Source of the DNA: Octopus sinensis
Taxonomy: Eukaryota
NCBI RefSeq assembly: GCF_006345805.1
Contig: NC_043010.1
Location: forward strand, 34,410,001-34,474,000
Direction of reading: 5' to 3'
Length of the DNA: 64,000 bases
The translations under genes and the position numbers were made by a program. Below, piece after piece: positions 25,104 to 63,067 of the stretch. Below the pieces are notes generated by a model that was given only the letters and a program-made list of their open reading frames with translations, ran no database searches and was not told where the DNA came from. Each line of letters begins with the position of its first letter. Position 1 is the first letter of the stretch.

Positions 25104-25294
25104 CATGTCACAACAAGATATGACCAGGTATATGTCACAATGGAATATGACCAGGCACATGTCACAATTAGATATCACCAGTTACACATCACAATGAGAT
25201 ATGACCAGTCATGTGTCACACCGAGATATGACCAGGTACATGTCATAAGGACATATGACCATTTGCCATGTCACACTACAAAATATGACTGGTA
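25104..25294. repeat. 27-bp minisatellite, 7 diverged copies (consensus about catgtcacaatgagatatgaccaggta)
   Basis: Seven consecutive units can be aligned by eye. Confidence 0.85.
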
Positions 25295-26331
25295 TTATAT
25301 CAAAATGTGACTTGCTTTTTTTTTATTTAATTTTTTTCTCCATATTTTTTTCTGATTAATTTTATAATAATAAATAACTACTAAGTAAAAACACCACACC
25401 CATAATGAACCAAAGAAAGAAAATAAAAAAATAGAAATTTACCCCAATTCTTCCAAAAATGCAAATAAAGAGCTTAAAGAAAAAGGGTTATCTTCAAATT
25501 ATATATAATCATATATAACCTATATTCAACTAGTAACAACATTATTATTAAATTACAATATTTATATTGTCAATTATCATTATTAAACTACTTATATGTA
25601 CTCTAATCAAAACTATTATTATTATTGAAAGTAAAATTAGTAGTAGTAGTAGTAACAGTAGTAGTACTTTGCACAAGATTAGTTTCTACCTTGAATAGGC
25701 AGGAAGTATAGTTTATTGAATTAAACCTCTTGGTATATAACTGGTATAATTAATAAAATGACTTTGTGTTCTTCCACATTTTGAGAAATGTAAGAAGAAA
25801 AAAAAGTCAAATTATGGCAGGATTCGAACCTAGTGCATTGAAGATGGAAACTAAATACTGCAGGTCATTTAGTCCGGTGCGCTACATTTTTAGAACCTAT
25901 TCAGCTCCCCCTCCCCTCCCACCCTATTGCAGGATGTTTCCATTATTAATAGCATGATAAAGGAAGAATTAGGACTTCTCAAAGTTATGTATGAAAGCAA
26001 CGCTAGATTTGTTTGTGTATGTATGTATAGTTACTTGTGTATATATGTGTGTGTGTATTTTCATGTGGTTGGATGCGTAAGTTATCTTATACAGGCGGGA
26101 TTTTGTTAATCTATTAAGACATATATATATATGTGTGTATATATATGTGCGTGTATATATATATATATATATATACACACAGGTATATATGTATATATGC
26201 ATATATATATATACATATACATTTATATATATGTAATATATAATATATACATATATATATATGTATATATACATAAAAATCAAATTAAATTAAGAGACCG
26301 CAATAATATTCTTTTTTCTTCTTTTTCTTAC

Positions 26332-29300
26332 ACGTGTACCAGTTGATATATATGCTAGGTTAATTTTACTGATGCGGTGTATATTACTCAGTGATCGTCC
26401 CCTTCTGGTTGAGTCTGAATCATTCCTGTCTGAGAGCATCTCCTGTTCAGAAAGCCACAATAATTCTTTTACTGGTGACCTCCGGCAGCGTGACCTCGAT
26501 CGTGGATTGTTGAAGGAGTCAGCTGATAAATAGGGAGATGTTGGTGTACCTGCTCTCTTTGTTGGTGGTGTTGAGTTCGCACGAGGTAGTGGCAGTGGAG
26601 GTGCACTCGTATCCTCAGAAACAACGATTTTAGGCCGTGGAGGAATTTTGGTCTTTTGATGGCTACTGTTGTCACGAGATGATTTATTGGAGTGCAACCA
26701 CAGAGCCGTGTCTATCTCGCACGAACTCTCAGTTGCAGTAGACAACTGTGACAAATTATGGTGCTTCTTCTTTTTCCTCTGCCTCTTCTTTCGCTTTGTC
26801 AGTGGTGTGGTATCTGAGAAAGCTGCTTCCTCTTCAGTTAGATGATGTATCAATGGCAGGTATGTATGCTGCCTATAAGGGGATTCAATTTTTATTAGAC
26901 TGACTGGAATGTTCTTTGAGTCCCTTGAATGTTTGCTCTTCTGTTTCTTTTTAGACAACAGCGGCGAAGCTTTGCTAGAAGAGTTCCCTTTCTGAGATTT
27001 CTGTTTGGAATTTGGATTAGCTTCACCTACTTTCCGCATGGATTTCTCGGACAGGGAACTGTCCAAGACTTTCTTATTGGACTTGTTCTTTGAATCTGAA
27101 TTTGAAGATTCAGTTCTTTCCTTGAATGATCTTTTGTCCTCTGTTTCTTTGAGTTCAGGGATTGTAAGTGATGACTGCTTTAATTTCTTCTTTTTGTGTG
27201 TTGAGAGTTCTTCCAGTGAATCTGTTACTTGTTTGGTAATTGATGTCACTAAAGAAGATATTTTATCAACAACAGACTTAGCAACTTTTCCAGTTGATGA
27301 TTCCTCTTTCTCTTTATTTTCTTTGTTTGGACATTTTGAGTCAGTTTCAGATGGAATTTTTGAAATTGGAGGTGCTATTGACATATGTGTCGTTTTCTCT
27401 TCAACAGGTTCCAACTTCACTAATTTCTCAGTTTCAGCAATGAATTTCTTCTGAGAATGTTCACTGCTTGTTATGGATGAAGAATCTGTTGAGATGTTCT
27501 TAGATTCTTTGCTTGGACACAATTCACTGGAATTTTCCTTTGTAGAGACTTCTTTGTGTTTTGTCTTTTTCTTTGACAACTTTAATATACTAGAATTATT
27601 CTCATTAGTCTTTGAGTCCTCAGAGCTTTCTTCGTTTGACGTACTAGATTTCTTTTTCCGGATTGGAGAGTCTTCAAGAACAGCTTGGGCTTTCTTAGAA
27701 ATTGCTGAAGAAACTTTCGACAAAGTTTGGCTAACCTTGTTCTCTGTCTTGGAAACACCTTTCTTTATTTCTACTGTATTATTATCTTCCACTACAGAAA
27801 TCTTGGCTGATGTTTCAACTGAAGAACTTTCAGGAGGAACTGGAATGACTTTACCACTTTCAGAGAATTTTACTTGTGATGTCTTCTTTTGTTTCTTCTT
27901 CTTTTTTGTGTCCTCTGGTGTTGTCATAACCTGACTATATTTTAGTTCTTCACTATTGGAAAAGCTCTGATTACTAATTGTGAGATCTGGAGTTTCTGCC
28001 ACTTTTAATTCTGATGTCATTGCTGGTGAGTCAACATATAAAGGACCTGTTTTTGTTGCCTTACTGGGAGTAGATTGGAAATATTCTTCAATTCCTTTCG
28101 ATAATATTGATTTCTCATCATCACCATAAGGGAAAGGTGAACGCCTTTTCTTCTTGGTTTCCAAAGAAGTTATTTTTGTATTGGAAGTGCTAGAGTTTTC
28201 ATTGTCCTTGCTTACAATGTTTGTTTCATCAAGAATTTCAGACTGAACATTTTCATTTGATTCAGAAATATTAACAAAAGATTTCTTATCAGATTTCTCA
28301 GCCAGTCTGAAATCAGCATCTTTGAAATCCTCAGAAAATAACAGATGTTTGTCACTACCTGTTCCTTCTGGGGGAGAGCTGATGGATTTTGAAACATGCT
28401 TATCCAGCATTGGTTTTCTAGAAAGTTCAAGTTCTGAATCACTTTCATCTAAATCCTCCTTAACAATAGCTGATAAATGTGGTTTCTCTTGTGCAAAGGC
28501 CAAATTATTCCCATCTTCAGTTCTGGATAGTTGCTCTACTTTTGCTTGTTTATTTTCTTTCTGAGCAGTCTTGTGAATGTTCTCGACAATCATTTCTCCT
28601 TTAACATCTTCCAGCATACTAGCTTGATGAGTAGTCACATCAATTTCAGTTTCAGATGGGAGCAGACTGTACACACACTCATCTGTTCTTTCTTCATTGC
28701 TCTCCACAACAAACTCTTTCTGAAGTTCTTCCTCTGAAGATAACTGTCTGTCAGTTTTAGGATAGTCATCTTGAGATTTGGTAGCTTCTGAATCTTTCAA
28801 TTCTTTCACCAGTGGAATCTGACCATCTCCCTCCTGACTTTTGAAGGCTCCATCTTTACAAAGAGTGTCTGGTGTTTTTTCTTTAGAAAATGATTCTTTA
28901 TCTTTCTTGGAAGACTGGTTAGACTTCTTCTGTTCTGATGTTGTTTCATTTTCATCTTTTAAAGATGACTTCTTTTTCTTTTTCTTCTTTTTCTTTGGAT
29001 GGATGTCTTTCTCAGTCTCTTCTTCAGGAGAACATTTTGTGCACGTAACATCCGTAGGTTCATGTGTGGAAACATGATCTTTAATCTCGGGAGTTGCTTC
29101 CTTCACTTGATTCTCATTAGGGGCACCATCGATGTCTTTATCAATTATTGTTTCGGGGGAAGATTTGCTCTCTGCCGACTTCAAAGAAGTAGTGTCAGTG
29201 CAAGATGAAACAGTTTCTGCAAGTGCAGGAAGTATATGTTGGCTGACATCAGGATCACTTATCATAGGTTCTATAAAATCAGATGAATTGATTGAGTCAT

Positions 29301-32300
29301 CACCATAGCCATATAAATATGGGGATCGCCTTTTCTTTCGTTTCTTCTTTGGCTTTTCTTCCTCAGGTGCAATTATACTTACATTGCTTGCAGCCACAGT
29401 TGACTGAACAGGGAAGGTAGGACTAGCAGTAATGGTGGATTCTCCACATTTAACTTCTAACTGCTTTTGCTCCACTTCTGTAATATCTGTTTTCAGTTCT
29501 ATTTGCTCTGGAGATGATTTGCTAAATGTCTCTGATTCCATTTGAGCTGGACTACTGTCCTTTATCTCCATCTGAGTTGTACTTTCCTCTGTCTTTGACA
29601 GAGCTGTATCTTCCGTTGCCTTCAACAGGCATGTACTTTCCTTTATTTCCTGTTGATCTGGACTGTCCTCTGTTTTCAACAGACATGACCTATGCTCTAT
29701 TTCTAGCTGAGTTGCATTGTCCCATTCAGCAGTTAAATTAACATTGGATGACTCTGTAAATGTTTCCTGAACATCTGAAATCTCAACATGTTTAACAAGA
29801 TCCACATTTTTACTCTGCTCTTCCTTTTTCTCTGACTGGTCAACAGATGAATGTTCAATGACTCCTATGTCTGTTTGTTCTTTGAGAAGCTGGCAATAAG
29901 GCTCAGTGTCAGCTATATTCACAAAAGCTTCAGGTTGTTGGACAGAAGCCGAATCAAAGCCAACTTCTTCTGAATACTTAATGTTGAGTGTGTTGTCATT
30001 CAATGGTTCACTGGTAATTTCACTGACTTCGCATTCTATACTTGAGATCTCAGTTTCATGAGTAAGCATTTCTTTACATGGACTGACAACTAATTTATTT
30101 ACAACTTGCTCAATTTCTTCTATATTAGCATTTTCTTTGATGACACTTGGAGTAAATTCAGAGTCTAGTAATTCAGTTGAAGACTCCTGTTCAGTAATTG
30201 CATCGACAAAGTGAGCGTCATGTGACAAATGAGATTCTTCTGTTACTGAATTGATTTTATTCTGTGTTTTTAAAGTATCTTCAGATATTTCAAATTTGTC
30301 TTCAACTGCTAAGCTAGTTGGTGGTAATTCTTTCAAAGATTCTTCTATTTCTAGTTCAGCCAATGATTGTATTTCCATTTGGTTTTTAGTTACAGCACTG
30401 TCATTTTGATCCAATGAAGCTATATTTGGATCCATACCTGAAGAATCAAACTCAGATTCCTTGGATAATTCTGCTGTTGTTTCAACAAACTGCATCAGCA
30501 TTTCATTATCAAGAGCAAAGAATCTTGGTTTTTTCTTCTGTTTCTTTTTCTTTTTGTTCTTGATGCCAGTATTCTTTGTGTCAGCATCAGTCTCTTTCAA
30601 GAACTGGTCTTTCTCTGTACTGTAATCTCTACAGATGTCTGTCTCTTGTCTTTGATTTTCATCAAATGTTGCCAAATGTTTGTCTGAAAGAATAATTTTA
30701 TGTTCTTCTTGACTTCTTAGTTCTTCTGGGAATTCAGTCACAACATAACTTGATTCATTTCCAAAACATTCTTTATAAAATTGTTCCGATGATGGCTGAA
30801 TGTTTTCAAGAGGTTTTTGTTGCTCCAGCTCTGCCTCATTACTTGCTGGTGAAAACTTGCCAATATCTGTTTCTGAGAATTCAGCATTAAAAATGTCCTC
30901 TGGCTTTTTTGTTGATGTTTCTTCAGTAAAGTTAGATTTAACTTCATCAAAAGTAACTGGCATAATTTCCTCTTCAGAATGGTCTTTATCAGGCACTGAT
31001 TTCTCAGCCAAAGAATTTTCAGGAATACTTACGCTACTTTCTTCAAAAGAGCTAGCTGAGGTAAATTCAAATTCTTTTCCTACTGATTCCAAAACACTGA
31101 CATTATCTAACTCCTTAGCTTGTGGTTCACTCAATTCTTCATGTTGGGTGGCATTCAACTCGTTAGTTTCACACAATTCTCTATTTAATAACTTCATCTG
31201 GAAAATATCAACATCTGAACTTACAGTCTCTTTAGAAGTTTCGCAATCAGCCCCATCATGTAATGAGGAACTAGATTCAGCTAGACTGGTGTTAACTGGA
31301 AGACTGTAGCTCAATGGTTTATCAATCTGTTGACGCATAGTTCCAAAGAAAACTTCTTTTCTATCAACAAATTCTGAAACATCATCAGACATTTTGTCAT
31401 TAGGACCTTCTGTGTGATCTTCAACAATTTCTATAATGGAACTCTCCTCAGAGATTTCTTCTGTAGCTTGAGAACTGAGATATTCAGAATGTTCTGGAAA
31501 ATTGTCAACATGGACATGTTTCCCATCAGCCGAATCAGGAACAGTAGCAATAATCTCTTTAGATAGATTTGCTTCAGTTAATGCTGCTTTATCTGTCTCA
31601 CTTATAACATCTTCAGATTTCATACTAACATCATCAGACTGGGTTTGCAAGTTGGTCTCTTCTGATGAAATGTTTGCTGATGGAAGCTCAGTACATTTAT
31701 TGCTTACATCATTTTCTCCACCGAATTCCAGAATAAGATGTTGATTTGATGGATAATCCCCATCAGAATCAGATGAGGATGTTTCCTGAGAAGACTCTGA
31801 ATGATCTTCTGGTGATTTTGGTCGCTTTGAAACATAGTTCTGTGACAGTTCATTAGAAATCTCTGAACTATCAACTGAAAGCAGAGATGACAAGTCAATA
31901 GCGAGTTGTTCTGATGTTTGTGTGAGTTCTTGTGATTCCCTGCGAAGTTTTTCCATATCTGTTGAATCCAGCACATCAGTTGGCTTTTCAGTGTCATCAT
32001 CGATGATGTTGCTATCATTATCAGCTATTTCATGAGCATTTTCTGCCTTACTACTAATGATATCAGATGACAAGAGCATTTCAGAATAAGTAAGTAGCAT
32101 GGTTTTTTCAGGATCAGTAGATTTAGTTTGCCAATAAGGTTCTGCTTGAGATGGATAATTCATCAGACTGGGATAATTACTGGTACCATATCGGAATTCA
32201 TTTTCCTTGCTGAAAGAGTAACAATCAGTTTGGTAACCTGACTTTGAATATTGTGTAACAGATCCTTTTTGATTTACTTTCTGAAGCATATCTTGAATTT

Positions 32301-35300
32301 GTTCTTCAGTAAAGTATGACATTCTGTCATTCCTTCTTTCATCTGCTGTGAAGTCAATGACAATAGAATCTCTACGATCGTTGCCCTTATCACTTAGTTT
32401 CTCCTCATGAGTATTTTTTACAATGATAGTTGTCTCCTCTTCAACCGATTCTTTTCTTTTTGATTCAAAGTTGTCTGAAGTGGTTGTATGTTCAGAAGGA
32501 GATTTTGCTATTGTGCATAAAACTTCTTCAGGAGAGTTTGCTAATGTCACACTAGATTTTACAGTTTTCTTTGATGGTGAACTTTCATCAAGGAGATTTG
32601 TTTCCTTGGGTTCAGCAATATTCATGTTTACTTCAGTTGAGAAAGTTCCGTACCTCTTTGGTATGACAAATATGTTATGGTAGTTTTTCATGTCATAGTC
32701 AGGTACAAAGGTGTGCAATGTGCAACGGAAGCCTTCATATGAAGATGTTGATGAGCAATCAGATTCCATTGAGGATAAGCGTTTCAGCAGTTCACTGTGA
32801 GTTTCTATTGGAAATCCTGATTCACTAAGTCGGTGATGTTTCAATGCCATTTTGCATTCCTCATTATCCAATTGACTCTCTTCAACATCTTTACTCATTT
32901 CCTCCTCTGAAGACTCAGAATAATTAGGTACATTAATAAACAAGGCATTTGAATAATTACGATGTGGGGACTTTCTACGCCACCTCCGAGCAATTCTGTC
33001 TCCAGGAGACAGCTTTGATTTTGATCGTTTTGAACGTGATGTTAAACCATCCCTTTTAGCACTTGAGCGCTGATTTTGCGATTTAGTTGTATCAGAAACG
33101 CCAGTGTTTGGTAGTTGTAATTCCAGTGTGCTTGTAAACCTACAGTTTTCATTTTCCTTGGTTCTATTAATGGAACTTTCTGAACTATCTAGATGTTCAT
33201 CGCTGACATGGAGTTCTTCAGTAATTGGCAATTCAACCATCAGGACATTAGCAAAGATTTCTTCATTTTCATTGGCTGAAGACTTTGACAGAACTTCTGT
33301 TGATTGGTCTGTTTCTCGATGCTGATCTGTAGAGAGTTCAGAAAACTCACTGGACTTAAGATTGTCTACATGTTGATTATCTTGGTGTTTTATGTTTTTA
33401 TCACAAGTGGGTTCTATACTAGTGACAAATTTAGAGCTTTGAAGATTTCCCTGTGTATCAAGATTATCTTTGTCCTTGTTTTTTCCCATTTTTTCAATGA
33501 AGTACAGAGTCTCCAATTTCAGCATTAACTGTGTGTCTGGAATGTCTTCAGCATAGTTGGAGTAAAGTGAAGCAACATTTTGTAATTTCTGCTCCATTTG
33601 TTCAGTTACCTCAAGATTTACATATTTTGTTTCTGTTTCACTAGGTACAACTAATTCATCAGAGTAAGTTTCTTGGTTGTCCATCACTTCTGTGGATCCC
33701 ATGGTATCTTGAACTTCTGTAAGACTTGCATCCTGGGGAATGATGGCATTGATGTCTTTTGTTACTTTGCCTTCCATGTTTTCATTTGAGTGGACCATTC
33801 CTTGAATGATTTCTGTAATTTTTTGAGAGATTTTAGTTCCTTCAGCTTTGACATCTTGCTCAGAAAGGTTTGCCTTTTCTGTTCGTTTGGTTCCTTCTGA
33901 TGCCATAGCTACAATTTCACTGAGAAGCAAAGATATCTCTTCTTCTATTATATGTTTGCGCTGAAGAGCTTCTGCCTTTTCCTGTTCAACTTTATTTAAA
34001 GTTTTTGTAGTCTCATCTGTTGGTAAAACTAGAGTAATGGATTCATTCACTTCAGACTGAGTGTCATATGTGTATGGAATATCAACTTTCACATGTGGTT
34101 CATCTTCAAAAAATATATCCTTAGCATCAAGATATTCATCATCAGAGTTGGACATAAGTGGCGTATTTTCACTGTCAGACACGCATGTTGAACTCATGTA
34201 GCCAGGAGTTGCTGTGAACATTGTTCCAGTTGAACTCGCCCAAGAGTCAAGACTACCAGAGAAAAATTCAGGCTGGTCTCGATAACAATAGCTTTTATTT
34301 TGCTGAGATAGGTTATTAGCAATTTGTTCTCGCAGTTCCCAGTTAAAATCTTCTCTGTGATCAATGCTGTAATCAATATCTGATGCTGTTTCCTTGAGTT
34401 GCTCAAAAGACAGCGGAGAGGTGGATGTTTCTCTGGAAGATGGCTCACTGTGAAGACTACCTTTGGAGAAATCGTCCATCCTGGAATTGAGTCGAAGCTT
34501 AACACTTTCCACATCTTCCAGTGGATACTTTTCTATTTCTGCATATTCACTGTCTTTTTGATGGGAAGTAAAATACATATTCCAAACTTCATTATCATCA
34601 GTATTTACAGCTTTTGTAACTAAAGATTTTTTCCCCGCAAAACCATGGCTCAGTTGGGTTAAATGGCAGTCTTTGTCAGCTGAAAATTGTAAAGGTGGTG
34701 AATAATTCTCTTCATTTTCACTATCACTAATTGAATCATATTCAAGTATTTCATGATATTCTACTGAAGAGTCCCTAGGTACATTATCTTCACAGTCACT
34801 AACCTCTTCAAGAGCTGCATGTTTTATGCTATGTTCTTTTCCTCCAGATGTAGAAAACTCTTTGGTTTCCACATCACCAGATATTTGGTTTTCAGTACTG
34901 AGAATATCAGCATCTTCAAGAGGATCAGACACAGTATCTTGCCAAGATTCCAAGAAAGTCTGCACAGGTTCTTCCACTTTTGTTCTTACCTGAACTAAAG
35001 AGGGGTCTTTCTCTTCCCAATCATTATCCTCTTCAAGAGCTGAATATTGCAAGTTGTCATCTGATGGTTCGATTCTGATTGATGTTACATCATCACCAAC
35101 ACTCTCTCGAACAATAGTCTCAGAAGTAGATATACATTCCAATTTATTTGTAGCAATATCTTTAGTATCAACATCTTGGTGTTTGGTTTTTACATCATCA
35201 GATATTTGGTCTTCAGTACTGAGTATATCAGCATCTTCAAGAGGATCAGATGAAGTATCTTTCCAAGATTCCAAGAAAGTCTTTTCAGGTTCTTCCGCTT

Positions 35301-38300
35301 TTGTTCTTACCTGAACTAAAGTGGGATCTTTCTCTTCCCAATCATTATCCTCTTCAAGAGCTGAATATTCCAAGTCATCATCTTCTTTACCAGGTGTCAT
35401 AGGTGTATAAAACATTGACCAAACATCAGTTTCATCACTAGTTGTCTTAGCTTCAGTTGAATCTGTCACATCTTTATGGTGAGATGCAGATGGTAAATCC
35501 TTAGTACCTTCTATTATACCAAGTTCATTTTCAATGTCATCAACAGACACATAAATGTCATCACTAATGTCGCATTTGTCATTACATGGAACAGTTGAGG
35601 ACTTTGGGATGACTTCTATATATCTAGATTGTATCACATTGTCAGAATCCTCATCCTCTTCGAGAGCTGAATATTCCAAGTTATCATCTTCTCCACCAGG
35701 TGTCATAGGTGTATAAAACATCGACCAAACATCGGTTTCATCACCAGATGTCGTTGCTGTCTTCTCTTCAGAAGAGTCTGTAATATCTCTATGCTGAGAT
35801 GCAGAATGTAAGTCCTTAGTTCTTTCTATTACTCCAAGTTCATTTTCAATGTCATCAACAGACACATAAATGCTGTCACCAGTGTCCCATTCTTCCTTAC
35901 ACGGAACAGCTGAAGACTTTGGCGCAACTTCTATATGCCTAGATTGTATCACATTGTCAGAATCCTCAGTACTTAGAATATCAGCATCTTCAAGAGGATC
36001 AGAGACAGTATCTTTCCATGATTCCATGAAAGTCTGCACAGGTCCTTCAATTGGATGTTTTACTTGCACTAAAGTGTGACCTTTCTCTTGCCAGTCATTA
36101 TCCTCTTCAAGAGCTGAATATTCCAAGTCATAATCGGATGGTTCAATTCTGACTGATGTCACATCATCACCAACACTTTCTCGGACAATATTCTCAGATG
36201 TATTAGTATCAACATGTTGGTGTGTGGTTTTCACATCATCAGGTGTTTGTTCTTCAGTACTCAGAATATCAGCATCTTCAAGAGGATCTGACGCAGTGTC
36301 TTTCCAAGATTCTAAGAAAGTCTTTTCAGGTTCTTCCACTTTTGATCTTACCTGAACTAAAGTTGGATCCTTCTCCTTCCAGTCATTATCCTCTTCAAGA
36401 GCTGAATATTCCAAGTTGTAATCTGATGGTTCAATTCTGACTGATGTCACATCATCACCAACACTCTCTTGGACAATATTCTCAGAAGTAGGTATTGATT
36501 TAAATTTCTTCACATCAATACTTTTTGTACCAACATTTTGGTCTTTGGATTTTCCATCATCAGGTGTTTGTTCTTCAGTACTGAGAATATCAGCATCTTC
36601 AAGAGGATCTGACGCAGTGTCTTTCCAAGATTCTAAGAAAGTCTTTTCAGGTTCTTCCACTTTTGATCTTACCTGAACTAAAGTTGGATCCTTCTCCTTC
36701 CAGTCATTATCCTCTTCAAGAGCTGAATATTCCAAGTTGTAATCTGATGGTTCAATTCTGACTGATGTCACATCATCACCAACACTTTCTTGGACAATAT
36801 TCTCAGAAGTAGATATTGATTTCAATTTCTTCACATCAATACTTTTTGTACCAACATTTTGGTCTTTGGATTTTCCATCATCAGGTGTTTGGTCTTCAGT
36901 ACTGAGAATATCAGCATCTTCAAGAGGATCTGACACAGTATCTTTCCAAGATTCTAAGAAAGTCTTTTCAGGTTCTTCCCCTTTTGTTCTTACCTGAACT
37001 AAAGTTGGATCCTTCTCCTCCCAATCATTATCCTCTTCAAGAGCTGAATATTCCAAGTTGTCATCTGATGTTTCAAATTTTACTGATGTCACATCAACAT
37101 CAATTCTATCTCTGACGACAGTCTCAGAAGTAGATTTTGTAAAGTCAGGAATTTCATATTGTTTTTTAACTATATCCTTAGATTCAACACCTTGGTCTTT
37201 GGTTTTTCCATCATCAGATATTTGGTCTTCAGTACTTAGAATATCAGCATCTTCAAGAGGATCTGATGCAGTATCTTTCCAAGATTCTAGGAATGTTTGC
37301 ACAGGTTTTACGACTTCACTTCTTACCTGAACTAAAGTTGGATCTTTCTCTTCCCAATCATTATCCTCTTCAAGAGCTGAATATTGCAAGTTGTCATCTG
37401 ATGGTTCAATTCTGACTGATGTTACATCATCACCAACACTCTTGCGGACAATATTCTCAGAAGTAGATATACATTCTAATTTCTTCATAGTAATATCTTT
37501 TGTATCAATATTTTGGTGTTTGGTTTTTACATCACCAGATATTTGGTCTTCAGTATTGAGAATATCAGCATCTTCAAGAGGATCTGATACAGTATCTTTC
37601 CAAGATTCCAAGAAAGTTTCCACAGGTCCTTTCATTTCTGTTCTTACCTGAACTAAAGTGGGATCTTTCTCCTCCCAATCATTATCCTCTTCGAGAGCTG
37701 AATATTCCAAGTTATCATCTTCTTCACCAGGTGTCATAGGTGTATAAAACATCGACCAAACATCGGTTTCATCACCAGATGTCGTTGCTGTCTTCTCTTC
37801 AGAAGAGTCTGTAACATCTTTATGCTGAGATGCAGAACGTTGGTGTGTGGTTTTCACATCATCTGGTGTTTGCTCTTCAGTACTCAGAATATCAGCATCT
37901 TCAAGAGGATCTGACACAGTGTCTTTCCAAGATTCTAAGAAAGTCTTTGCAGGTTCTTCCACTTTTGTTCTTACCTGAACTAAAGTGGGATCTTTCTCCT
38001 TCCAGTCATTATCCTCTTCAAGAGCTGAATATTCCAAGTCGTAATCTGATGGTTCAATTCTGACTGATGTCACATCATCACCAACACTCTCTCGAACAAT
38101 ACTCTCAGAGGTAGATATACATTCCAATTTATTTGTAGCAATATTTTTTGTATCAAGACCTTGGTGCTTGGTTTTTCCATCATCAGGTGTTTGGTCTTCA
38201 GTACTGAGAATATCAGCATCTTCAAGAGGATCTGATGCAGTATCTTTCCAAGATTCCAGGAATGTCTGTATAGGTTCTTCTACTACACTTGTTACCTGAA

Positions 38301-41300
38301 CTAAAGTGGGATCCTTCTCCTCCCAATCATTATCCTCTTCAAGAGCTGAATATTCCAAGTCATCATCTTCTTTACCAGGTGTCATGGGTGTATAAAACAT
38401 TGACCAAACATCTGTTTCATCATGGGTTGCCTTCTCTTCAGAGGAATCTGTGACATCTTTGTGGTGAGACGGAGATGGTAAATCCCTAGTTCTGTCAGTT
38501 ATACTAAGTTCTTTTTCATTAACAGACACATAAATGTTGTTATCGGAATCCCATTGTTTTGTACAAGAAACAGTTGAAGATTTAGCAACAACTTCTGTAT
38601 GTCTTGAGTTTATCACATTGTTACTAGAATCATCAGTACTCAGAATATCAGCATCTTCAAGAGGATCTGACACAGTGTCTTTCCAAGATTCTAAGAAAGT
38701 CTTTGCAGGTTCTTCCACTTTTGTTCTTACCTGAACTAAAGTGGGATCTTTCTCCTTCCAGTCATTATCCTCTTCAAGAGCTGAATATTCCAAGTCGTAA
38801 TCCGATGGTTCGATTCTGACTGATGTTACATCATCACCAACACTCTCATGGACAATATTCTCAGATGTAGATAGTGATTCCAATTTCTTCACATCAATAC
38901 TTTTTGTACCAATATTTTGGTCTTTGGATTTTCCATCATCAGGTGTTTGGTCTTCAGTACTGAGAATATCAGCATCTTCAAGAGGATCTGATACAGTATC
39001 TTTCCAAGATTCCAAGAAAGTCTTTTCAGGTTCTTCCACTTTTGTTCTTACTTGGACTAAAGTGGGATCTTTCTCTTCCCAATCATTATCCTCTTCAAGA
39101 GCTGAATATTCCAAGCTGTCATCTGATGGTTCAAGTTTCACTGATGTCACATCATGATCATCAAATCTCTCTCTGCCTACATTTTCAGAAGTCACTCTAT
39201 CAAAAGCCTTTGTTTCAAAATCTTGTTCCTTGGTATCTAAATCACCAGATATTTGATGATCTTCAGTTCTTAGAATATCAACATCTTTAAGATGATCTGA
39301 CACAGTATCTTTACAAGATTGCAAGGAAGTTTCCATAGGCTCTTCACCTTCTTGTCTTTCCTGAGCTAAATTTGGGTCTTTCTCTTTCAAGCCATTATCC
39401 TCTTCAAGAGCTGAATAATCCACTTTAGTGTATGATGTATTTTCTTCTATTTTACTACCATCCTCTGCATCAACAAATTCCATTTTAAGCTCCTCTTCTG
39501 CATCAACAAATTCAGCATCTTCCTTATCTGAATATTCACTGTCTTCTGTTGTCTCTTTGTGACTTAAATCCTGATGTTCGCTTTCAACAATTTCTTTCTC
39601 TGAGAATAAGTTCCCATCTTCAGTTGTCTGATGCACAGATGTTTTCTCAAAGACACTAGTTTGTGTAACTATTGTATTTGAATCTTGATATTCATAACGA
39701 CTGCTAGTTTCTTTGTCAGTAGATGAGTCGTCATTATCAGACATCACTTCCTCCTTCTTGTCATTCTCTTCCTCCTCACCATTTTCTGGAGAAGTAGAAA
39801 GCATAGCTAACCATATATCATCATCATCTTGATCATCATAATCATCGCCTTTCTTATCAGGTTCTTCTTCCAAAGTTTTTATTTCATCTACTTTTCCTGA
39901 AGGTTCTTCATCTGATTGGAAGGTGTCACATGTCATTTTCTTGATATCAGTGTCTTTAATCAAAGAACCTTCAGGTTTGGAAGGTGAACCATCAATATGA
40001 TCAATGCTTTTGGATTCACTTGTGGTATCTGACTGAAAAAATCCATCTTTGGAAAAACTTTTGGAACTTCGTTCAATTGTGCGGAAATTGGTATCAGGTA
40101 TTAGAAAAGACTCACATCTATCAATACTGCATTCATCTGTAAAAGAGATATTCTCAGATATTAATGTTTTTTCTTGAAGCATTGAGTCCAACTGCAGAGA
40201 GAGATCAAAATGTCTACCACTGATGTTATTTTCAGCAGGTGTTTTGTCATCAGATATCTCTTTCTTTTCAGAATTACTCTCTTTCCTATTTTCTTCACTA
40301 TCAAGAGAAGGTGCTTGATGTTTCCCACCAGAATTAGAAGAACCTAATAATATGTCAGAAGATTCTGTGACAATTTTGTGCTGAGATATAGATGGTAAAT
40401 TTCTAGTTACTTGTGTTATACCAAGTTCATTTTCAATGTCATCAACAGACACATAAATATTGTCATCAGAATCCCAATTTCTCTGAGTAGGAAAAGTTGA
40501 AGATTTAGCAACAACCTCTGCATGTCTAGATTGCATCACATTGACAGAATCATCAGTACTGAGAATATCAGCATCTTCAAGAGGATCTGACACAGTGTCT
40601 TTCCAAGATTCTAAGAAAGTCTTTGCAGGTTCTTCCACTTTTGTTCTTACCGGAACTAAAGTGGGATCTTTCTCCTTCCAGTCATTATCCTCTTCAAGAG
40701 CTGAATATTCCAAGTCGTAATCTGATGGTTCAATTCTGACTGATGTCACATCATCACCAACACTCTCTCGAACAATAATCTCAGAGGTAGATATACATTC
40801 CAATTTATTTGTAGCAATATTTTTTGTATCAAGACCTTGGTGCTTGGTTTTCCCATCATCAGGTGTTTGGTCTTCAGTACTGAGAATATCAGCATCTTCA
40901 AGAGGATCTGACACAGTATCTTTCCAAGATTCTAAGAAAGTCTTTGCAGGTTCTTCCACTTTCGTTCTTACCTGAACTAAAGTTGAATCCTTCTCCTTCC
41001 AGTCATTATCCTCTTCAAGAGCTGAATATTCCAAGTCGTAATCTGATGGTTCAATTCTGACTGATGTCACATCATCACCAACACTCTCTTGGACAATATT
41101 CTCAGAAGAAGATATTGATTTAAATTCTTCACATCAATACTTTTTGTACCAACATTTTGGTCTTTGGGTTTTCCATCATCAGGTGTTTGGTCTTCAGTAC
41201 TCAGAATATCAGCATCTTCAAGAGGATCTGACGCAGTGTCTTTCCAAGATTCCAAGAAAGTCTTTGCAGGTTCTTCCACTTTTGTTCTTACCTGAACTAA

Positions 41301-44300
41301 AGTGGGATCTTTCTCCTTCCAGTCATTATCCTCTTCAAGAGCTGAATATTCCAAGTCGTAATCTGATGGTTCAATTCTGAGTGATGTCACATCATCACCA
41401 ACACTCTCTTGGACAATATTCTCAGAAGTAGGTATTGATTTAAATTTCTTCACATCAATACTTTTTGTACCAACATTTTGGTCTTTGGATTTTCCATCAT
41501 CAGGTGTTTGGTCTTCAGTACTCAGAATATCAGCATCTTCAAGAGGATCTGACACAGTGTCTTTCCAAGATTCTATGAAAGTCTTTGCAGGTTCTTCCAC
41601 TTTTGTTCTTACCTGAACTAAAGTGGGATCTTTCTCCTTCCAGTCATTATCCTCTTCAAGAGCTGAATATTCCAAGTCGTAATCTGATGGTTCAATTCTG
41701 AGTGATGTCACATCATCACCAACACTCTCTTGGACAATATTCTCAGAAGAAGATATTGATTTAAATTTCTTCACATCAATACTTTTTGTACCAACATTTT
41801 GGTCTTTGGGTTTTCCATCATCAGGTGTTTGGTCTTCAGTACTCAGAATATCAGCATCTTCAAGAGGATCTGACGCAGTGTCTTTCCAAGATTCTGAGAA
41901 AGTCTTTTCAGGTTCTTCTACTTTTGATCTTACCTGAACTAAAGTTGGATCTTTCTCCTTCCAGTCATTATCCTCTTCAAGAGCTGAATATTCCAAGTCG
42001 TAATCTGATGGTTCAATTCTGACTGATGTCACATCATCACCAACACTCTCTTGGACAATATTCTCAGAAGTAGGTATTGATTTAAATTTCTTCACATCAA
42101 TACTTTTTGTACCAACATTTTGGTCTTTGGGTTTTCCATCATCAGGTGTTTGGTCTTCAGTACTCAGAATATCAGCATCTTCAAGAGGATCTGACACAGT
42201 GTCTTTCCAAGATTCTAAGAAAGTCTTTGCAGGTTCTTCCACTTTTGTTCTTACCTGAACTAAAGTGGGATCTTTCTCCTTCCAGTCATTATCCTCTTCA
42301 AGAGCTGAATATTCCAAGTCGTAATCTGATGGTTCAATTCTGAGTGATGTCACATCATCACCAAAACTCTCTTGGACAATATTCTCAGAAGTAGGTATTG
42401 ATTTAAATTTCTTCACATCAATACTTTTTGTACCAACATTTTGGTCTTTGGATTTTCCATCATCAGGTGTTTGGTCTTCAGTACTCACAATATCAGCATC
42501 TTCAAGAGGATCTGACACAGTGTCTTTCCAAGATTCTATGAAAGTCTTTTCAGGTTCTTCCACTTTTGTTCTTACCTGAACTAAAGTGGGATCTTTCTCC
42601 TTCCAGTCATTATCCTCTTCAAGAGCTGAATATTCCAAGTCGTAATCTGATGGTTCAATTCTGACTGATGTCACATCATCACCAACACTTTCTTGGACAA
42701 TATTCTCAGAAGTAGATATTGATTTCAATTTCTTCACATCAATACTTTTTGTACCAACATTTTGGTCTTTGGATTTTCCATCATCAGGAGTTTGGTCTTC
42801 AGTACTCAGAATATCAGCATCTTCAAGAGGATCTGACACAGTGTCTTTCCAAGATTCTAAGAAAGTCTTTTCAGGTTCTTCCACTTTTGTTCTTACCTGA
42901 ACTAAAGTGGGATCTTTCTCCTTCCAGTCATTATCCTCTTCAAGAGCTGAATATTCCAAGTCGTAATCTGATGGTTCAATTCTGACTGATGTCACATCAT
43001 CACCAACACTCTCTTGGACAATATTCTCAGAAGTAGGTATTGATTTCAATTTCTTCACATCAATACTTTTTGTATCAACATTTTGGTCTTTGGATTTTCC
43101 ATCATCAGGTGTTTGGTCTTCAGTACTCAGAATATCAGCATCTTCAAGAGGATCTGACACAGTGTCTTTCCAAGATTCTAAGAAAGTCTTTTCAGGTTCT
43201 TCCACTTTTGTTCTTACCTGAACTAAAGTGGGATCTTTCTCCTTCCAGTCATTATCCTCTTCAAGAGCTGAATATTCCAAGTCGTAATCTGATGGTTCAA
43301 TTCTGAGTGATGTCACATCATCACCAACACTCTCTGGACAATATTCTCAGAAGTAGGTATTGATTTAAATTTCTTCACATCAATACTTTTTGTACCAACA
43401 TTTTGGTCTTTGGATTTTCCATCATCAGGTGTTTGGTCTTCAGTACTCAGAATATCAGCATCTTCAAGAGGATCTGACACAGTGTCTTTCCAAGATTCTA
43501 AGAAAGTCTTTTCAGGTTCTTCCACTTTTGTTCTTACCTGAACTAAAGTGGGATCTTTCTCCTTCCAGTCATTATCCTCTTCAAGAGCTGAATATTCCAA
43601 GTCGTAATCTGATGGTTCAATTCTGACTGATGTCACATCATCACCAACAATTTCTTGGACAATATTCTCAGAAGTAGATATTGATTTCAATTTCTTCACA
43701 TCAATACTTTTTGTACCAACATTTTGGTCTTTGGATTTTCCATCATCAGGTGTTTGGTCTTCAGTACTCAGAATATCAGCATCTTCAAGAGGATCTGACA
43801 CAGTGTCTTTCCAAGATTCTAAGAAAGTCTTTTCAGGTTCTTCCACTTTTGTTCTTACCTGAACTAAAGTGGGATCTTTCTCCTTCCAGTCATTATCCTC
43901 TTCAAGAGCTGAATATTCCAAGTCGTAATCTGATGGTTCAATTCTGACTGATGTCACATCATCACCAACACTCTCTTGGACAATATTCTCAGAAGTAGGT
44001 ATTGATTTCAATTTCTTCACATCAATACTTTTTGTATCAACATTTTGGTCTTTGGATTTTCCATCATCAGGTGTTTGGTCTTCAGTACTCAGAATATCAG
44101 CATCTTCAAGAGGATCTGACACAGTGTCTTTCCAAGATTCCAAGAAAGTCTCCACAGGTTCTTCATATTTATGTTTTACCTGAAATAATGTAGGGCCTTT
44201 TTCTTCCCAGTCATTATCCTCTTCAAGAGCTGAATATTCCAAGTTGTCTATTTGCACAGACATCACCTCAGAAACACCTACTTCCCTTATAACATTTTCA

Positions 44301-47101
44301 GAAGTGGGAGTATTAATGTCAGGAATGTTTGAATATATCACAGTATTTATGTTTTTTCCATCATTAGTGTTGTCATAGTTTGGTATTTCCACATCTCTTG
44401 TTAGAATATCAGCATCTTCAAGAGGATCTGATGCAGTGTCTTGCCAAGATTCCAAGAACGTCTGCACCGGCAATTGATGATATTCAACAACTTGTAGTTT
44501 GGACGGATCTTTCTCTTCCCAGTCATTATCCTCTTCAAGAGCTGAATATTCAAGATTCTTCTCATCTGTAGCTGCATCGTTTTTTCCATTTTCAGAAGAA
44601 TCTAAAAGATTTTCATTCTTTAAAATTTCATGAGTATTTATTTCTCTATCTACAGAATGTACTGTTTCCCCAGAACTTTCAGGATCTTGGGACTCATCTC
44701 CATTCATTAACAGCTGTGTTGTGATGTTGTTTATTTCACTGTGATGAATGCCAAGCAGTTCTTGTGTTCCTTGAGATGAGCAGTCGATAACTCCTGAAGT
44801 GATCTTATCACTTTCAACTTTTGTAACCTGAGGATCTTGTCTTCTTTCAGATGTTTTTGTGTCTCCAACACCTTTGAAACTATCTTCTGATGAATAAAAT
44901 TTTGACCATATATAAAGATCTTTCCGATCTTCTTCAAGTGGTTCAGACACAGTGTATTTCCAATCAGTGCTATATTGATTTCTGTCGATCAATGATTTAT
45001 AATCATCTGTGTTCTCATCTGTTTCATAAAATTTCCTCCAAATTTCATTGTCTCTGCTTATTTTCAAAGCCTTCTCTTCCCAATCCTTGTTGGATATTGG
45101 ATTGTAAAACATTTTCCAAATGTCTTCATGCTCTATTTCATTTTCCAAAGGTTCAGATTCTGTAGAATCGTCTTTCAGTAAGTATGCCATGGTGTCATTA
45201 TTGTCTTTACTTGGTTCTTTCAGAGTAAGACATGGCTTTTCATTCCAGTCATTATCCTCCTCAAGTGGAGAATAAAACTTTGTCCAAACCTCATTATATT
45301 CCGTATCTAAATTTGAAGTTACTGAATCTGAATGTGGTTGTACAGTTTGGTCAATGGGACTGGATCTTCCATCAAATCCAGTTGAAACACCCAAAGTAAC
45401 TTCCTCTGAGTGTGATGGAAGCCTATTGCTTTCTGGTTCTGGTGATGCTTTTGTCTCTGGCTGGGTTAAACCAGCTTTGCTTGTCATAATGTCCTTGCTT
45501 ATTGATGTCATTTTAGTTACAGGACATATGTCATATAATGTTTCGGTAACATATTGGTGTGGTTGTTGGGTTTGAGTTTCATCAAGATTAGAGGACACTT
45601 GGTAAGTTTTGTCCTCCAAATTAGTCCACTGAGGAATATTATCTGACTGATTTACTAAGATGGAACTAGTGGTGTCAGTCATTTTCATATCAGTTTTTTG
45701 TTCAACTGAATTATATTCAAAGTTGTTTAATTCACTCTCATCTTTAGATGTTTCTGTATGAGAGGAAACATTAGTGACCAAATCAGACCTGCTAAATTGG
45801 GCATCTACAGTGTCTGAAGATTTGGTCTCTTCTGGCTTACCTGTAGATTGTAAAGAAGCTTCTTCAGCCTCTCCACTTGTGACAATTTCTTGGGTAGTTT
45901 TTTGTGTTCTGTCAGAGTCGAGTAGGCTAATGTTGGTATCAGCTTCAACAGGTATTAGCTTCTCAGAACTTTTCAGTTCTTCATATTTTTGTACGTTTGT
46001 GTCTCTTCTAGAAACAACATCTTTAGCTCCTAGCGAATTCAGTTTTTCACCTGTATATTCTAATTCATAATCTTCAGTTTCTTCTCCATCTAAACTTTGT
46101 ATTTTTAGGGGTTGTTTTAAAATTGGGCTAACTGAAGATTCTTGAAAGGATAAAGGATCAGATTCTTTTGTGTTAGTGGCTTGTAATGTAGCTTGGTCCA
46201 AAAGAGAACCATCCTTTATAACTAAACTAGACATTTCTTGACTAAACCTTATCTGGTCTCCTTGTAGGGAATCTAAGCCTGAAGATACGTCATCTCTTGA
46301 GACAGTTATAGAACTTTCACAGATGTTAGTACTGTAATTGTCTTCAGAGACTTGAGTTACTCCTAAATCTAAAGCCCCACCACTGCCACTTTCAGGTTTT
46401 TCTACTCTAGTTACATCAGACTGGCTATGGGCAACATATTCTAAATCAGATTGATCTAAACTTTCATGGTCAAACTCATGTGAAGTTTCTGATATGGGGG
46501 TAGAAATACTAAGATCACCTGACATGAGGCCTGAATCAAACATCTCTGATGTGGAATAATCACTGCTAGGGGATATTTCTTCTCTACGATCTAAATACTT
46601 TAGTTTTGAGTTTTCATTCGCTGAAGGAGATTCTACAAGAGAATCGTTGTTAGTCACATGATCAACATTTAAGTCACTGGTAGCTTTGACCAGTCCTGCA
46701 TCTACATCACTGCAAATACCATTATAAAAAAAACCATTGCTTACTTCCTCAGCTTTGGAAGCAGTGTTGCCATCTGTGTCTTCACTGTACTCTGCCAAAC
46801 CTGAAGTTTCGGAAGTTTTCTTTGTAAGTGCATTTGTTTCTTGAAGAGAGGTAATGTCTCCTGCCCCAGGCTGTTGAATCTCCACAGTTGGAGAATGTAT
46901 ATTGCTGAGGCGAGTTTGCATTTCACAAACGTCCTTTCCAGGGGCCGATTCTTCTTCATTGTATGCCCAAGCCCATGGAAAGTCATCAGCCCATCCTGTG
47001 TTAGCTGGCGGTAAAGAAATGGGAGTTTCTTCGGTTGGGGGAGATTTTAGGAATGGGTCTGTTAAAGATTCGGTGCTGCCAAAACCCTCACTATTTAGCA
47101 C
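26332..47101 (-). CDS. Giant coding exon (20,770 nt as assembled; 20,772 nt = 6,924 aa after repairing two 1-nt deletions): disordered repeat-rich scaffold region
   Basis: Three abutting ORFs (47155-43313, 43316-41067, 41070-26290) are broken only where a repeat unit lacks one T (about 43335 and 41125). Acceptor atttctttacAG|GTG at 47101 in phase 0. Donor CGT|GTAAGA at 26332 in phase 0 (alternatives: ACTG|GTACAC at 26340, or read-through to TAA at 26290). No SINE or microsatellite in about 21 kb. Confidence 0.85.
34880..44560 (-). repeat. Coding tandem repeat array: 27 YSALEED motifs, mostly in a 321-bp/107-aa unit, interleaved with a second module
   Basis: The unit [61 protein letters not shown]... 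was counted in the three ORF translations (4+7+16). Periodicity 321 bp (e.g. 41786/42107, 42719/43040). Confidence 0.95.
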
Positions 47102-49153: not shown

Positions 49154-49264
49154 CTCTTGGGATATTGTGCATCTTTCATCTTTCCCAACGGTATCCCTGC
49201 GACTCGATGACTTGCTCCATTCAGCATGGCCCATTTTCACTAGCTCTTCATTGATGTTAGTTGT
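49154..49264 (-). CDS. Exon (phase 0-0) TTNINEELVKMGHAEWSKSSSRRDTVGKDERCTISQE: C-terminal helix of an extended Tudor/SN-like domain
   Basis: Acceptor tttttttttaccctctag| and donor GAG|GTACGA; 111 nt. INEELVKMGHAEW fits the recalled IN..LV..G.A.W terminus of extended Tudor domains (e.g. AKAP1 INRSLVERGLAQW). Phase matches the giant-exon acceptor. Confidence 0.75.
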
Positions 49265-57351: not shown

Positions 57352-57405
57352 CTTGGCTGCAGCCCGTTTTGTGTAGGCTCTCAGCCACAAATTACACCAG
57401 GTCAC
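57352..57405 (-). CDS. Exon (phase 0-0) VTWCNLWLRAYTKRAAAK, probably the strand preceding the Tudor-SN terminal helix
   Basis: Acceptor ctctccccaaatccttccttcacag| and donor AAG|GTAGGT; 54 nt, only frame 0 open. When joined to 49264, CNLW...INEELV parallels AKAP1 IQLW...INRSLV. Confidence 0.6.
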
Positions 57406-61827: not shown

Positions 61828-63067
61828 CAATGTGGCAAGAATGATCCAGTGGGAGCTCTGTGGAAATCACGGGCTACAAAGAGCTAGTTAACTACATTGT
61901 CTCCGGTACTCAATTGGTACTTATTTTATCAACTTCAAAAGGATGAAAGGCGAAGTTGACTTCAGTGGAATTTGAACTCAGTATGTAAAAAGCCAAAATA
62001 AATGTCGTTTTTGCCTGGTGTGGTAAGGATTCTGCTAAATCTGATCCCCAAAAGGATGAAAGGTAAAGTTGCCATCAACAGGATTTGAGTTCAGAATGTA
62101 AAGAGCTAGCAAGATTGAGTTTCTGTGGATGTTGACTGTAAAATTGAATTGATAAAGAAATCTCAGAAAAATATCAACATATGCTATATTGCTCATGGTT
62201 GTGCTGGATATTTTGGAAAGGTTTTGATTATGTATGTGTGTGTGTGTGTGTAAGCATGTGTACCATTTAGAACTCTTTACTAATATAACTTTTTATTTTA
62301 TTAAAAGAAATCAAATTTTTCTTTGAAACCATTTACTTTTTTGTTGGGGGTTGAGTAGGAACTTGCTTTCCTCATGGAAGTCTTGACCATTTTGAATACC
62401 AAACCTGCTTGAATCTAAATCTGGTTTTAATGATACAAAACTGTCCTTTTTTGTAAAGTGATCATATATAAATTATAATTCAGAAAACTCTTCCACAATA
62501 ATTTTGTCAGACATCTTCAGTTACATTATGGCCAAAATACTAGCTTACTAACATCAGATTTAATTATTTTATACAGTGTTCAAATATTTTCAAAATTGAT
62601 TGAAATACTTAGTGTTATTTCATAAAAAATATGGTCAGTAAAAATTTAACAAGAAATAAAATATAAATAGAAACAAAAAGAAAATAATGGAAATAAATAA
62701 ATAAAACAAAAGTAAAACTAAAATAAAACTAATTCTAAAAAGCATCCAGAAGATAACAACAAAAATATGCAAAAAACAATAACTAAATCTACAAATTCGG
62801 TGAGTGGCTGGTGGCTTGAAAAGATCTGTAAGGGTTACAGTAAAGTTTAGAAGCCATCTAGAATGTGACAAAGTTGGAAACAACAAACAAGCTATATGTG
62901 TATATTTGTAGCTATATCCATCTATATATGTATGTGTGTTTGTGTGTGTGTGAGCATGTGTATCATGACTGAGCGGTAGAGTGCCATCATCATCTCATCA
63001 TGTCATCTTTTTTGATGAGTGCTGGGATTGGGTTTTCCCCTATCATGTGTGAAACTGATTGGTAAAA

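Follow-up and report, generated by a model that had tools for sequence, protein, structure and literature searches.

The 64,000 nt stretch of Octopus sinensis DNA analyzed here (contig NC_043010.1, positions 34,410,001 to 34,474,000 of RefSeq assembly GCF_006345805.1; hereafter, the window) contains on its minus strand the 3′ part of a gene that is, judging from its sequence, the octopus ortholog of TDRKH/Papi, with a predicted additional tail of approximately 6,937 residues encoded by a single terminal exon (Table 1). This tail carries 27 tandem copies of a module built around the sequence YSALEED. In a protein search, the giant exon matched LOC115219318 from O. sinensis (6,301 aa, with a Tudor domain) and LOC106876374 from O. 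bimaculoides (6,410 aa, with KH and Tudor domains). Pfam identified a Tudor domain (8e-24) and two KH domains (6e-19) in the folded N-terminal part, and the best matches among solved structures were extended Tudor domains, namely those of TDRKH from human and mouse, Papi from the fly and BmPapi from the silkworm (1e-21 to 1e-18). The N-terminus was supplied by the Argonauta hians model and by a second O. sinensis model, LOC118765947; a signal-anchor (MFDITITGKLALFVALPTTFVLLYLLL), resembling the anchor of limpet TDRKH, is present in proteins P0007 and P0008. The orthology assignment is based on these domains, the structural matches and the anchor, which together give the arrangement characteristic of TDRKH/Papi, i.e., an N-terminal membrane anchor followed by two KH domains and an extended Tudor domain.

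The exons for the anchor, the KH domains and the Tudor domain are mostly situated outside the window, the last extended-Tudor exon, which contains INEELVKMGHAEW, being inside. This exon is joined to the giant exon in three gene models, and the exon order is also kept in A. hians (locus L003) and in a more distant relative (contig L001, see below). The acceptor site of the giant exon is canonical (tttctttacag/GTG at 47101). In O. sinensis, the gene is annotated as split over two loci, LOC118765947 (anchor and KH domains) and LOC115219318 (Tudor domain and tail). Reading past the donor of the Tudor exon (49154/49153, minus strand) yields 38 further codons and then a stop (VREIPSLTNLWVKNSSQISLPYILKKKDILDSIALDILSL), making conceivable a short TDRKH isoform of conventional length that lacks the giant exon.

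The octopus protein shares its anchor, two KH domains and extended Tudor domain with TDRKH/Papi (TDRD2), the mitochondria-anchored scaffold for PIWI and the trimmer PNLDC1. Mouse TDRKH is 560 aa long, requires its transmembrane segment for mitochondrial targeting and recruits MIWI and PNLDC1 (PMC6411938), and TDRKH from the limpet Patella (469 aa) has no tail and stops shortly beyond the Tudor domain; in contrast, the octopod protein is predicted to add approximately 6,900 C-terminal residues, including 27–28 tandem modules. In the literature searched, we found no description of these loci, of a cephalopod TDRKH, of the repeat or of the giant repeat-bearing tail.

As assembled, the giant exon consists of three abutting open reading frames (ORFs) in three different frames, containing 4, 7 and 16 copies of the motif. 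The distribution of the copies over three frames results from two single-base deletions in short runs of A, and the insertion of one placeholder base at each break produces an ORF of 6,937 codons (47101–26290). Both breaks are most likely homopolymer-length errors of the assembly, because they are losses from A runs within near-identical repeats, the sequence downstream is open, and the region is read through in one frame in both sister lineages, O. bimaculoides and Argonauta. The deletions could alternatively be real, in which case the O. sinensis protein would end after unit 4 and the other 23 copies would be the remnant of a dying exon; they are, after all, present in the assembly, and the NCBI model skips the sequence around them. 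We consider this very unlikely, since the approximately 5,800 codons downstream are free of stops despite the AT-rich DNA, one-base losses from A runs in near-identical repeats occur at typical sites of assembly error, and the two sister lineages maintain a single frame. The NCBI model at this locus avoids the breaks by skipping pieces of the repeat and a stretch of 640 residues, and therefore shows 22 copies instead of 27. In turn, the annotated TDRKH model of Argonauta (626 aa) treats the 20-kb giant exon (L003 34723-54894) as an intron.

The initial annotation of this DNA described a 27-fold array of YSALEED, and all 27 copies were recovered on the minus strand (26 YSALEEDN and one YSALEEDED); their Tyr codons are situated between 44548 and 35046, and overall the nine codons of L-E-Y-S-A-L-E-E-D cover 44554-35026. 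Its details were also confirmed: position −2 is aliphatic in every copy (26 Leu, one Val), all 27 copies have Tyr and Leu(+3), and each of the diverged or truncated variants that it named could be located (VDYSAL in unit 14, LQYSAL in units 20 and 27, and the truncated copy in unit 25). The sequences D-W-[KEQ]-E-K, F-[LIMS]-E-S-W-[KQ]-D-T and DPLEDADI, described as kept in full units, are each present in 25 of the 27, as is the pair of Trp residues situated 25 aa apart, at +9 and +34. The basic period is 321 nt (107 aa). The array is a tandem duplication inside an open frame and not a chance pattern, because this frame is far too long to occur by chance in DNA with 37% GC. DNA identity among units 3–12 is 89–99% (mean 96.5%), and the cores of units 3–13 are 94–100% identical.

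Table 1. Features of the TDRKH ortholog and neighboring sequences (coordinates of the window).
Feature	Position	Strand	Remarks
Upstream exon (DSFVSLKPDLDSSRFGIQNGQDFHEESKFLLNPQQK), after the Tudor core	62335..62443	-	tblastn with P0002
Small upstream exon (QVTWCNLWLRAYTKRAAAK)	57352..57408	-	tblastn with P0002; also in the Argonauta model
Penultimate exon, 37 codons (TTNINEELVKMGHAEW...CTISQE), end of the extended Tudor domain	49154..49264	-	Splice sites ag/ACA ... GAG/gtacga; tblastn with P0002; phase 0 into the giant exon
Giant terminal coding exon of the TDRKH ortholog, 20.8 kb	26290..47101	-	6,937 codons after bridging two 1-nt gaps; stop 26292-26290
Four degenerate W-x-x-F-Y-type proto-modules, upstream of the array	44894..45286	-	First one orthologous to KWAMLYSPLEEDDDWKEK in L001
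Array of 27 modules, basic period 107 aa	34822..44644	-	Core: 12 residues, [KE], 42 residues
Motif, units 1-5	44554-44528, 44242-44216, 43921-43895, 43600-43574, 43280-43254	-	
Motif, units 6-10	42959-42933, 42638-42612, 42317-42291, 41996-41970, 41675-41649	-	
Motif, units 11-15	41354-41328, 41034-41008, 40713-40687, 39423-39397, 39114-39088	-	
Motif, units 16-20	38793-38767, 38358-38332, 38037-38011, 37710-37684, 37389-37363	-	
Motif, units 21-25	37056-37030, 36735-36709, 36414-36388, 36126-36100, 35679-35653	-	
Motif, units 26-27	35373-35347, 35052-35026	-	
Recently amplified or homogenized block, approximately units 2-13	40553..44244	-	Tandem Repeats Finder: 11.5 copies of 321 nt, 96% matches
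Frame break 1, unit 5: one A lost from an AA run (GTCCAAGAG to GTCCAGAG; GTCC-AGAG)	43336..43337	-	Unit of 320 instead of 321 nt
Frame break 2, unit 11: one A lost from an AAA run (GAAGAAAT to GAAGAAT; GAAG-AAT)	41127..41128	-	Unit alignment
Four type B linker motifs, each preceding the next YSALEED by 20-25 aa	38406-38392, 37758-37744, 35727-35713, 35421-35407 (span 35407..38406)	-	
Post-array tail, eight Lys/Arg clusters of the KKKRKKRR type	26311..30555	-	
Second recurring motif in the post-array tail, two copies	29331-29311, 28146-28126	-	
27-nt tandem repeat, 5.9 copies (CATGTCACAATGAGATATGACCAGGTA)	25104-25261		
Decayed mariner/Mos1-type transposase remnant	50272-51112	+	Pfam HTH_48 7e-14
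149-nt inverted repeat pair	52133-52281, 54686-54834		78% complementary, 2.4 kb apart
Dispersed 100-nt repeat families	55594-55865, 59226, 61886		

The invariant block spans approximately 55 aa rather than nine, with YSALEED as the first of three or four islands, which read hydrophobic-x-Y-S-x-L-E-[ED]-D, [DE]-W-[EK]-E and T-F-x-E-x-W-K-[DE]-T-x-S-D-P-L-E-[DE]. This core is followed by one of two linkers, the 52-aa linker A or the longer linker B. The motif found in the B linkers has as counterparts DWLSFYSPVxED in L001 and EIWSMFYRP in Argonauta; altogether, there are eight copies of this companion motif, W-x-x-F-Y-[ST]-P, in the window and at least ten in L001. One of the W-x-x-F-Y motifs situated ahead of the array combines both motif types, which suggests that the ancestral form was W-x-x-hydrophobic-Y-S-x-L-E-E-D-x-D-W.

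Asp and Glu make up 27% of the array, whose 3,235 aa carry a net charge of −534; after this acidic block comes a stretch with scattered basic patches. Within the latter, each copy of the second recurring motif is situated directly after a Lys/Arg cluster. AlphaFold2 modeled one unit with a mean predicted local distance difference test (pLDDT) score of 57 and a predicted template modeling (pTM) score of 0.14, using a shallow alignment of 21 near-identical rows, and two units with a pLDDT of 44, a pTM of 0.11 and no residue above 70, using one of 11 near-identical rows; besides, the unit falls on the unfolded side of a charge-hydropathy plot (mean hydropathy of 0.386, with the boundary at 0.467). 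From these low scores and the charge-hydropathy values we conclude that the unit would not have an autonomous fold, the tail being predicted to be disordered. Its domain-like size, the distribution of conserved hydrophobic and aromatic positions along 55 aa, the alternating pattern TLVQVRTKV of the middle stretch and a weak hairpin drawn by AlphaFold2 in the linker are the features expected if the 107-aa unit were a small globular or solenoid repeat with YSAL as a buried structural element. The poor scores of both models, the acidic composition together with the low hydropathy, and a unit length that ranges from 76 to 142 aa across lineages make such a folded repeat extremely improbable. A Pfam search with the tail did not identify any family either; the matches to Alpha_adaptin_C and DUF6625 were sub-threshold and the LRRNT_2 line had 0 significant stretches, and all of them were judged to be noise caused by the repeats.

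The motif is also present in the orthologs of other lineages. The locus of A. hians (L003, GCA_054771915.1) contains one intact ORF of 6,724 codons, in which all 28 modules share one frame and the C-terminus is the same. In L001 (ENA ERZ21867824 ctg78229l, 36% GC; protein P0003), the last Tudor exon is followed by the giant exon, in the same order, and there are at least 20 modules of 76–79 aa, with neighboring modules being 63–65% identical in DNA. Among 20 modules from L001, Tyr and Ser are retained in all, Leu in 18, Glu in 18, [ED] in 20 and Asp in 19, with synonymous variation in the Ser, Leu, Glu and Asp codons. Position +2, where T, G, V, A, P, N or S can be found, is free, and position −2 is occupied by I (five modules), L (four), V (four), M (three), T (three) or S (one). 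The L001 islands W-E-E and T-F-x-x-x-W-K-x-T-x-S-[DE]-[PS]-L-E-E align with those of Octopus; DADIL has no aligned equivalent, D-W-L-S-F-Y-S-P being what corresponds there. The L001 array has a repeat structure of its own, with a two-module unit of 465 nt and a higher-order repeat of approximately 1,641 nt, and it changes frame once, at 18550-18600 (frame 1 to frame 0), after the stop that ends P0003, running on to the contig end.

An exhaustive HMMER search with a profile of the unit retrieved P0001, P0003 and P0004 only. The latter, from a metagenome contig with 46% GC, was rejected as a homolog because it is made of RIEPNKKDLNFSAFES repeats that have 18–24 residues in common with the unit and its score is inflated by its own repetition. 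The RIEPNKKDLNFSAFES repeat protein at L002 769-4809 (JGI 3300056788) is unrelated, mimicking these 18–24 module residues with Phe in place of Tyr, and was considered a chance resemblance that repetition inflates. A search with a mixed-lineage module profile (A2) did not return the known positives either and is uninformative on homologs.

The initial annotation pictured the array as ruler-like, with one site per 107 aa. Spacing is, however, different in each lineage, with 107 aa in Octopus, 88, 93, 110 or 142 aa in Argonauta and 76–79 aa in L001, which rules out the ruler idea and indicates that it is the module that is selected.

Within Octopus, synonymous variation in the motif is minimal (proportion of synonymous differences, pS, 0.03–0.05) and the 24-mer TATTCAGCTCTTGAAGAGGATAAT is identical in 25 of the 27 units. 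The within-array ratio of nonsynonymous to synonymous rates (dN/dS) is therefore uninformative for the motif, and we used a comparison between genera instead. Between Octopus and Argonauta, the ratio of nonsynonymous to synonymous differences (pN/pS) was 0.023 for LEYSALEED (pS 0.33, pN 0.008), 0.07 for NDWxEKDP, 0.16 for TFxESWKDT and 0.15 for the 10-residue island, versus 0.54 for the middle stretch and 0.71 for the next four residues, these two being adjacent non-island stretches of the 55-aa module. Likewise, the differences per site between O. bimaculoides units and their best O. sinensis match were 0.028 in the motif, 0.023 in the 10-residue island and 0.062 in TFLESWKDT, rising to 0.138 in the middle stretch and 0.214 in the linker. 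With copy age controlled in this manner, the motif is much more constrained than the linkers. Within Octopus, pN/pS was 0.05–0.20 for the other islands versus 0.74–0.84 for linker A.

Core identity is 0.91 within Octopus and 0.89 within Argonauta, versus 0.80 between them, and the Ser codon of the motif is TCA in the 26 Octopus units counted (the truncated unit 25 was omitted) but TCC or TCG in Argonauta. Since units are more alike within than between species and have lineage-specific Ser codons, the arrays evolve in concert, or were amplified independently, with their amino acids held by selection. Unequal crossing-over or gene conversion, acting separately in each lineage, expanded and homogenized the arrays, with purifying selection acting on the islands, and most strongly on YSxLEED.

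Homogenization by itself might account for the 27-fold identity, which would then be the neutral by-product of a young tandem repeat, owed to recency and gene conversion and devoid of function. The high mean DNA identity of units 3–12, a motif nearly invariant within Octopus even at synonymous sites and the greater similarity within than between species are what this explanation predicts. Nevertheless, we give it a minimal probability: between genera the motif accumulated synonymous but hardly any amino acid differences, the L001 modules retain Y, S, L and E-[ED]-D in spite of the low DNA identity of neighboring modules, and the islands are fixed while linkers and spacing drift freely. The first two of these observations largely refute it.

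The scarcity of synonymous changes in the Octopus motif was also apparent in a codon table, where by-eye counting gave variation in 1/8 motif columns versus 26/47 other core columns (Fisher p = 0.05). A nucleotide-level constraint behind the invariant 24-mer is suggestive only, and is undercut by the synonymous divergence in Argonauta and L001. The codons for YSALEED (GCT CTT GAA GAG GAT) and DPLEDAD (CCT CTT GAA GAT GCT) have in common the 10-mer CTCTTGAAGA, which is found in each unit (44548-35026, minus strand); in addition, CTCTTGAAGAG is a near-palindrome. Within Octopus, the two stretches show almost no synonymous variation, for which AT-ending codons, gene conversion or RNA-level constraint are candidate causes.

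Sequence comparisons therefore describe a strongly selected, multivalent linear-motif array in the acidic, predicted disordered tail of a TDRKH ortholog, with approximately 20–28 copies in three lineages. The question is what might read it. The initial annotation saw in it an immunoreceptor tyrosine-based inhibitory motif (ITIM), so that L-x-Y-S-A-L, phosphorylated by a Src- or Syk-type kinase, would recruit SHP2/Csw-like SH2 proteins in many copies. The sequence (hydrophobic or T)-x-Y-[S/A/T]-x-L is indeed like that of the ITIM and of the immunoreceptor tyrosine-based switch motif of inhibitory immunoreceptors, and [SIVL]xYxx[IVL] occurs in all 27 units of the window and all 28 Argonauta modules. 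Position −2 stays hydrophobic, or Thr or Ser, in L001, and it is read by SHP-type SH2 domains and not by the LC3-interacting regions (LIRs) considered below; acidic flanks suit tyrosine kinases; and Tyr is never replaced by Phe or Trp in 75 modules, a swap that a purely hydrophobic anchor might tolerate. Nonetheless, ITIMs occur in one to few copies in the tails of plasma-membrane receptors, whereas here there are 27 copies in the tail of a TDRKH ortholog with a mitochondrial-type N-terminal anchor. Besides, positions as far as +13 and two further islands are under constraint, with the invariant Ser+1, E-[ED]-D at +4 to +6 and Trp+9 being, like those islands, outside the footprint of an SH2 domain and beyond the reach of AP mu. 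Also, the ITIM consensus (S/I/V/L)-x-Y-x-x-(I/V/L) occurs in only 14/20 L001 modules, the other six having M or T at −2. The ITIM-like reading is thus quite unlikely; it appears to be a pattern match in the wrong protein context, and LIR-like or other acidic-aromatic docking would fit equally well. The sorting motif YxxPhi of the adaptor protein (AP) mu subunits, also proposed initially, belongs close to the membrane in the cytosolic tails of transmembrane cargo; its pattern is there, but the sites are 850–4,020 residues into the product of the giant exon, and further still from the TDRKH-type mitochondrial anchor.

In a LIR-type reading, Y-S-x-L would be a Tyr-type core for Atg8/LC3 tuned by phosphorylation, as in FUNDC1, and the tail a high-avidity GABARAP/LC3 platform for mitophagy or for autophagosome-independent scaffolding. 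The core [WFY]xx[LIV] is present in all octopod modules and in 19/20 of those from L001. Tyr is flanked on both sides by acidic residues (E at −1 and D at −3 on the upstream side), disorder is predicted for the region, and Y-x-x-[LVM] is also part of the related W-x-x-F-Y-[ST]-P-[LVM] motifs. To our knowledge, however, neither a Ser at X1 nor a conserved hydrophobic residue at −2 is a LIR feature. The sequence leading up to Tyr is D-L-E-Y in Octopus, but position −1 is K, Q, L or N in 11/20 L001 modules (Lys in four and Gln in five), the pattern [WFY]xx[LIV] is cheap, as it occurs 27 times outside the array in the same protein, and the two Trp islands are left unexplained. In FUNDC1, a protein of the mitochondrial outer membrane, the LIR is Y18-x-x-L21, whose binding is weakened by Src phosphorylation of Tyr18 and strengthened by a neighboring phosphoserine (PMC5233613). 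The octopus module resembles this site in its Y-x-x-L core, its acidic, Ser-rich context, the outer-membrane location expected for its host and a possible phospho-switching on Tyr and Ser; FUNDC1, however, has a single site, and the octopus module adds to it the hydrophobic −2, the invariant Ser+1 and the obligatory downstream Trp islands, none of which pertain to a LIR. Overall, we regard a LIR-type reader as unlikely.

Two further candidate readers were compared with the sequence. The W-acidic pattern recognized by the kinesin light chain is [L/M/I/V]-[D/E]-W-[D/E], and its strict form has 0 matches in the 6,937 residues, where the contexts of Trp are N-D-W-[KE]-E and E-S-W-K-D; this candidate was rejected. 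YSALEED does not conform to the phosphorylated form of the motif that has two phenylalanines within a tract of acidic residues (Phospho-FFAT), having E, Q or K at core position 2, where the key aromatic residue is needed; aromatic position 2 and S/T at position 4 are found only in the separate W-x-x-F-Y-[ST]-P motifs. These companions have an aromatic pair, Ser/Thr and Pro in the same order as the STARD3-type Phospho-FFAT that binds VAP and MOSPD2 (with S/T at position 4), together with an acidic tract and an organelle-anchored host (PMC7705450), although the match is weak evidence because approximately 10% of human proteins score as Phospho-FFAT candidates.

The general reading of the modules as docking sites displayed at the surface of an organelle is, on balance, a probable one. 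Each module would bind on contact, with aromatic and Leu residues (Y, L, W and F/W) as its anchors in an acidic context, and the tail would offer a single partner approximately 27 such sites on the organelle's cytosolic face. The array would thereby increase avidity or act as the nucleus of a condensate of the kind seen in nuage or intermitochondrial cement, and Tyr might be read unmodified, by LIR-like or hydrophobic-pocket binding, or be used as a phospho-switch. The S-x-x-E context of the invariant Ser at +1 is of the CK2 type. Of the docking platform initially proposed, the conserved short motifs and paired Trp residues, their multivalency, the predicted disorder and the selection all support the general part; the specifically ITIM-like part does not agree with a TDRKH host.

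Several points weigh against the docking reading. The role as docking sites is deduced solely from the pattern of conservation; if the tail had a purely physicochemical role, as an acidic spacer carrying aromatic stickers, conservation would look similar, although the invariant Ser, Tyr and Trp would probably not be expected. Low pLDDT values obtained from such shallow alignments are weak evidence of disorder. That the giant exon is spliced to the exons of TDRKH is deduced from gene predictions and exon order, the mitochondrial localization is extrapolated from mouse TDRKH, and the assembly as given has two frameshifts, so that the literal protein would stop after four modules. A bolder version, in which cephalopods would have made of this piRNA-trimming scaffold a giant organelle-anchored tether of approximately 7,500 residues, is rather unlikely. 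The 27–28 modules could then be a receptor array, phospho-switched on Tyr and Ser, for an Atg8-, SH2- or VAP-type reader, and could also nucleate nuage or intermitochondrial cement, a task that falls to separate germ-plasm organizers in other animals. Giant ankyrins and Drosophila Futsch and Ank2-XL similarly use giant, alternatively included exons that add thousands of disordered tandem-repeat residues to a modular scaffold, but they have no sequence relation with the octopus protein and belong to another host family, and the octopus exon is terminal.

The sequences neighboring the coding exons also contain repeats. The intron upstream of the giant exon carries the remnant of a mariner/Mos1-type transposase, with many stops and with a DDE-like fragment (HPPYSPDFAPSNYYLF) downstream of the HTH_48 match, and also the inverted repeat pair. 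The dispersed 100-nt families look like short interspersed nuclear elements or miniature inverted-repeat transposable elements, and the 27-nt tandem repeat, situated approximately 1 kb downstream of the stop, is possibly in the 3′ untranslated region.

These loci illustrate a systematic annotation problem, with the gene split and trimmed around frameshifts in O. sinensis and the exon discarded as an intron in Argonauta. TDRKH is a compact, well-studied hub of the mitochondrial 3′-end maturation of piRNAs, and here its predicted giant exon would supply dozens of copies of a single linear module under strong selection (pN/pS of about 0.02). A lineage with a 20-kb TDRKH exon would therefore be a natural experiment on how multivalency and disordered tails may organize germ granules or organelle contacts.

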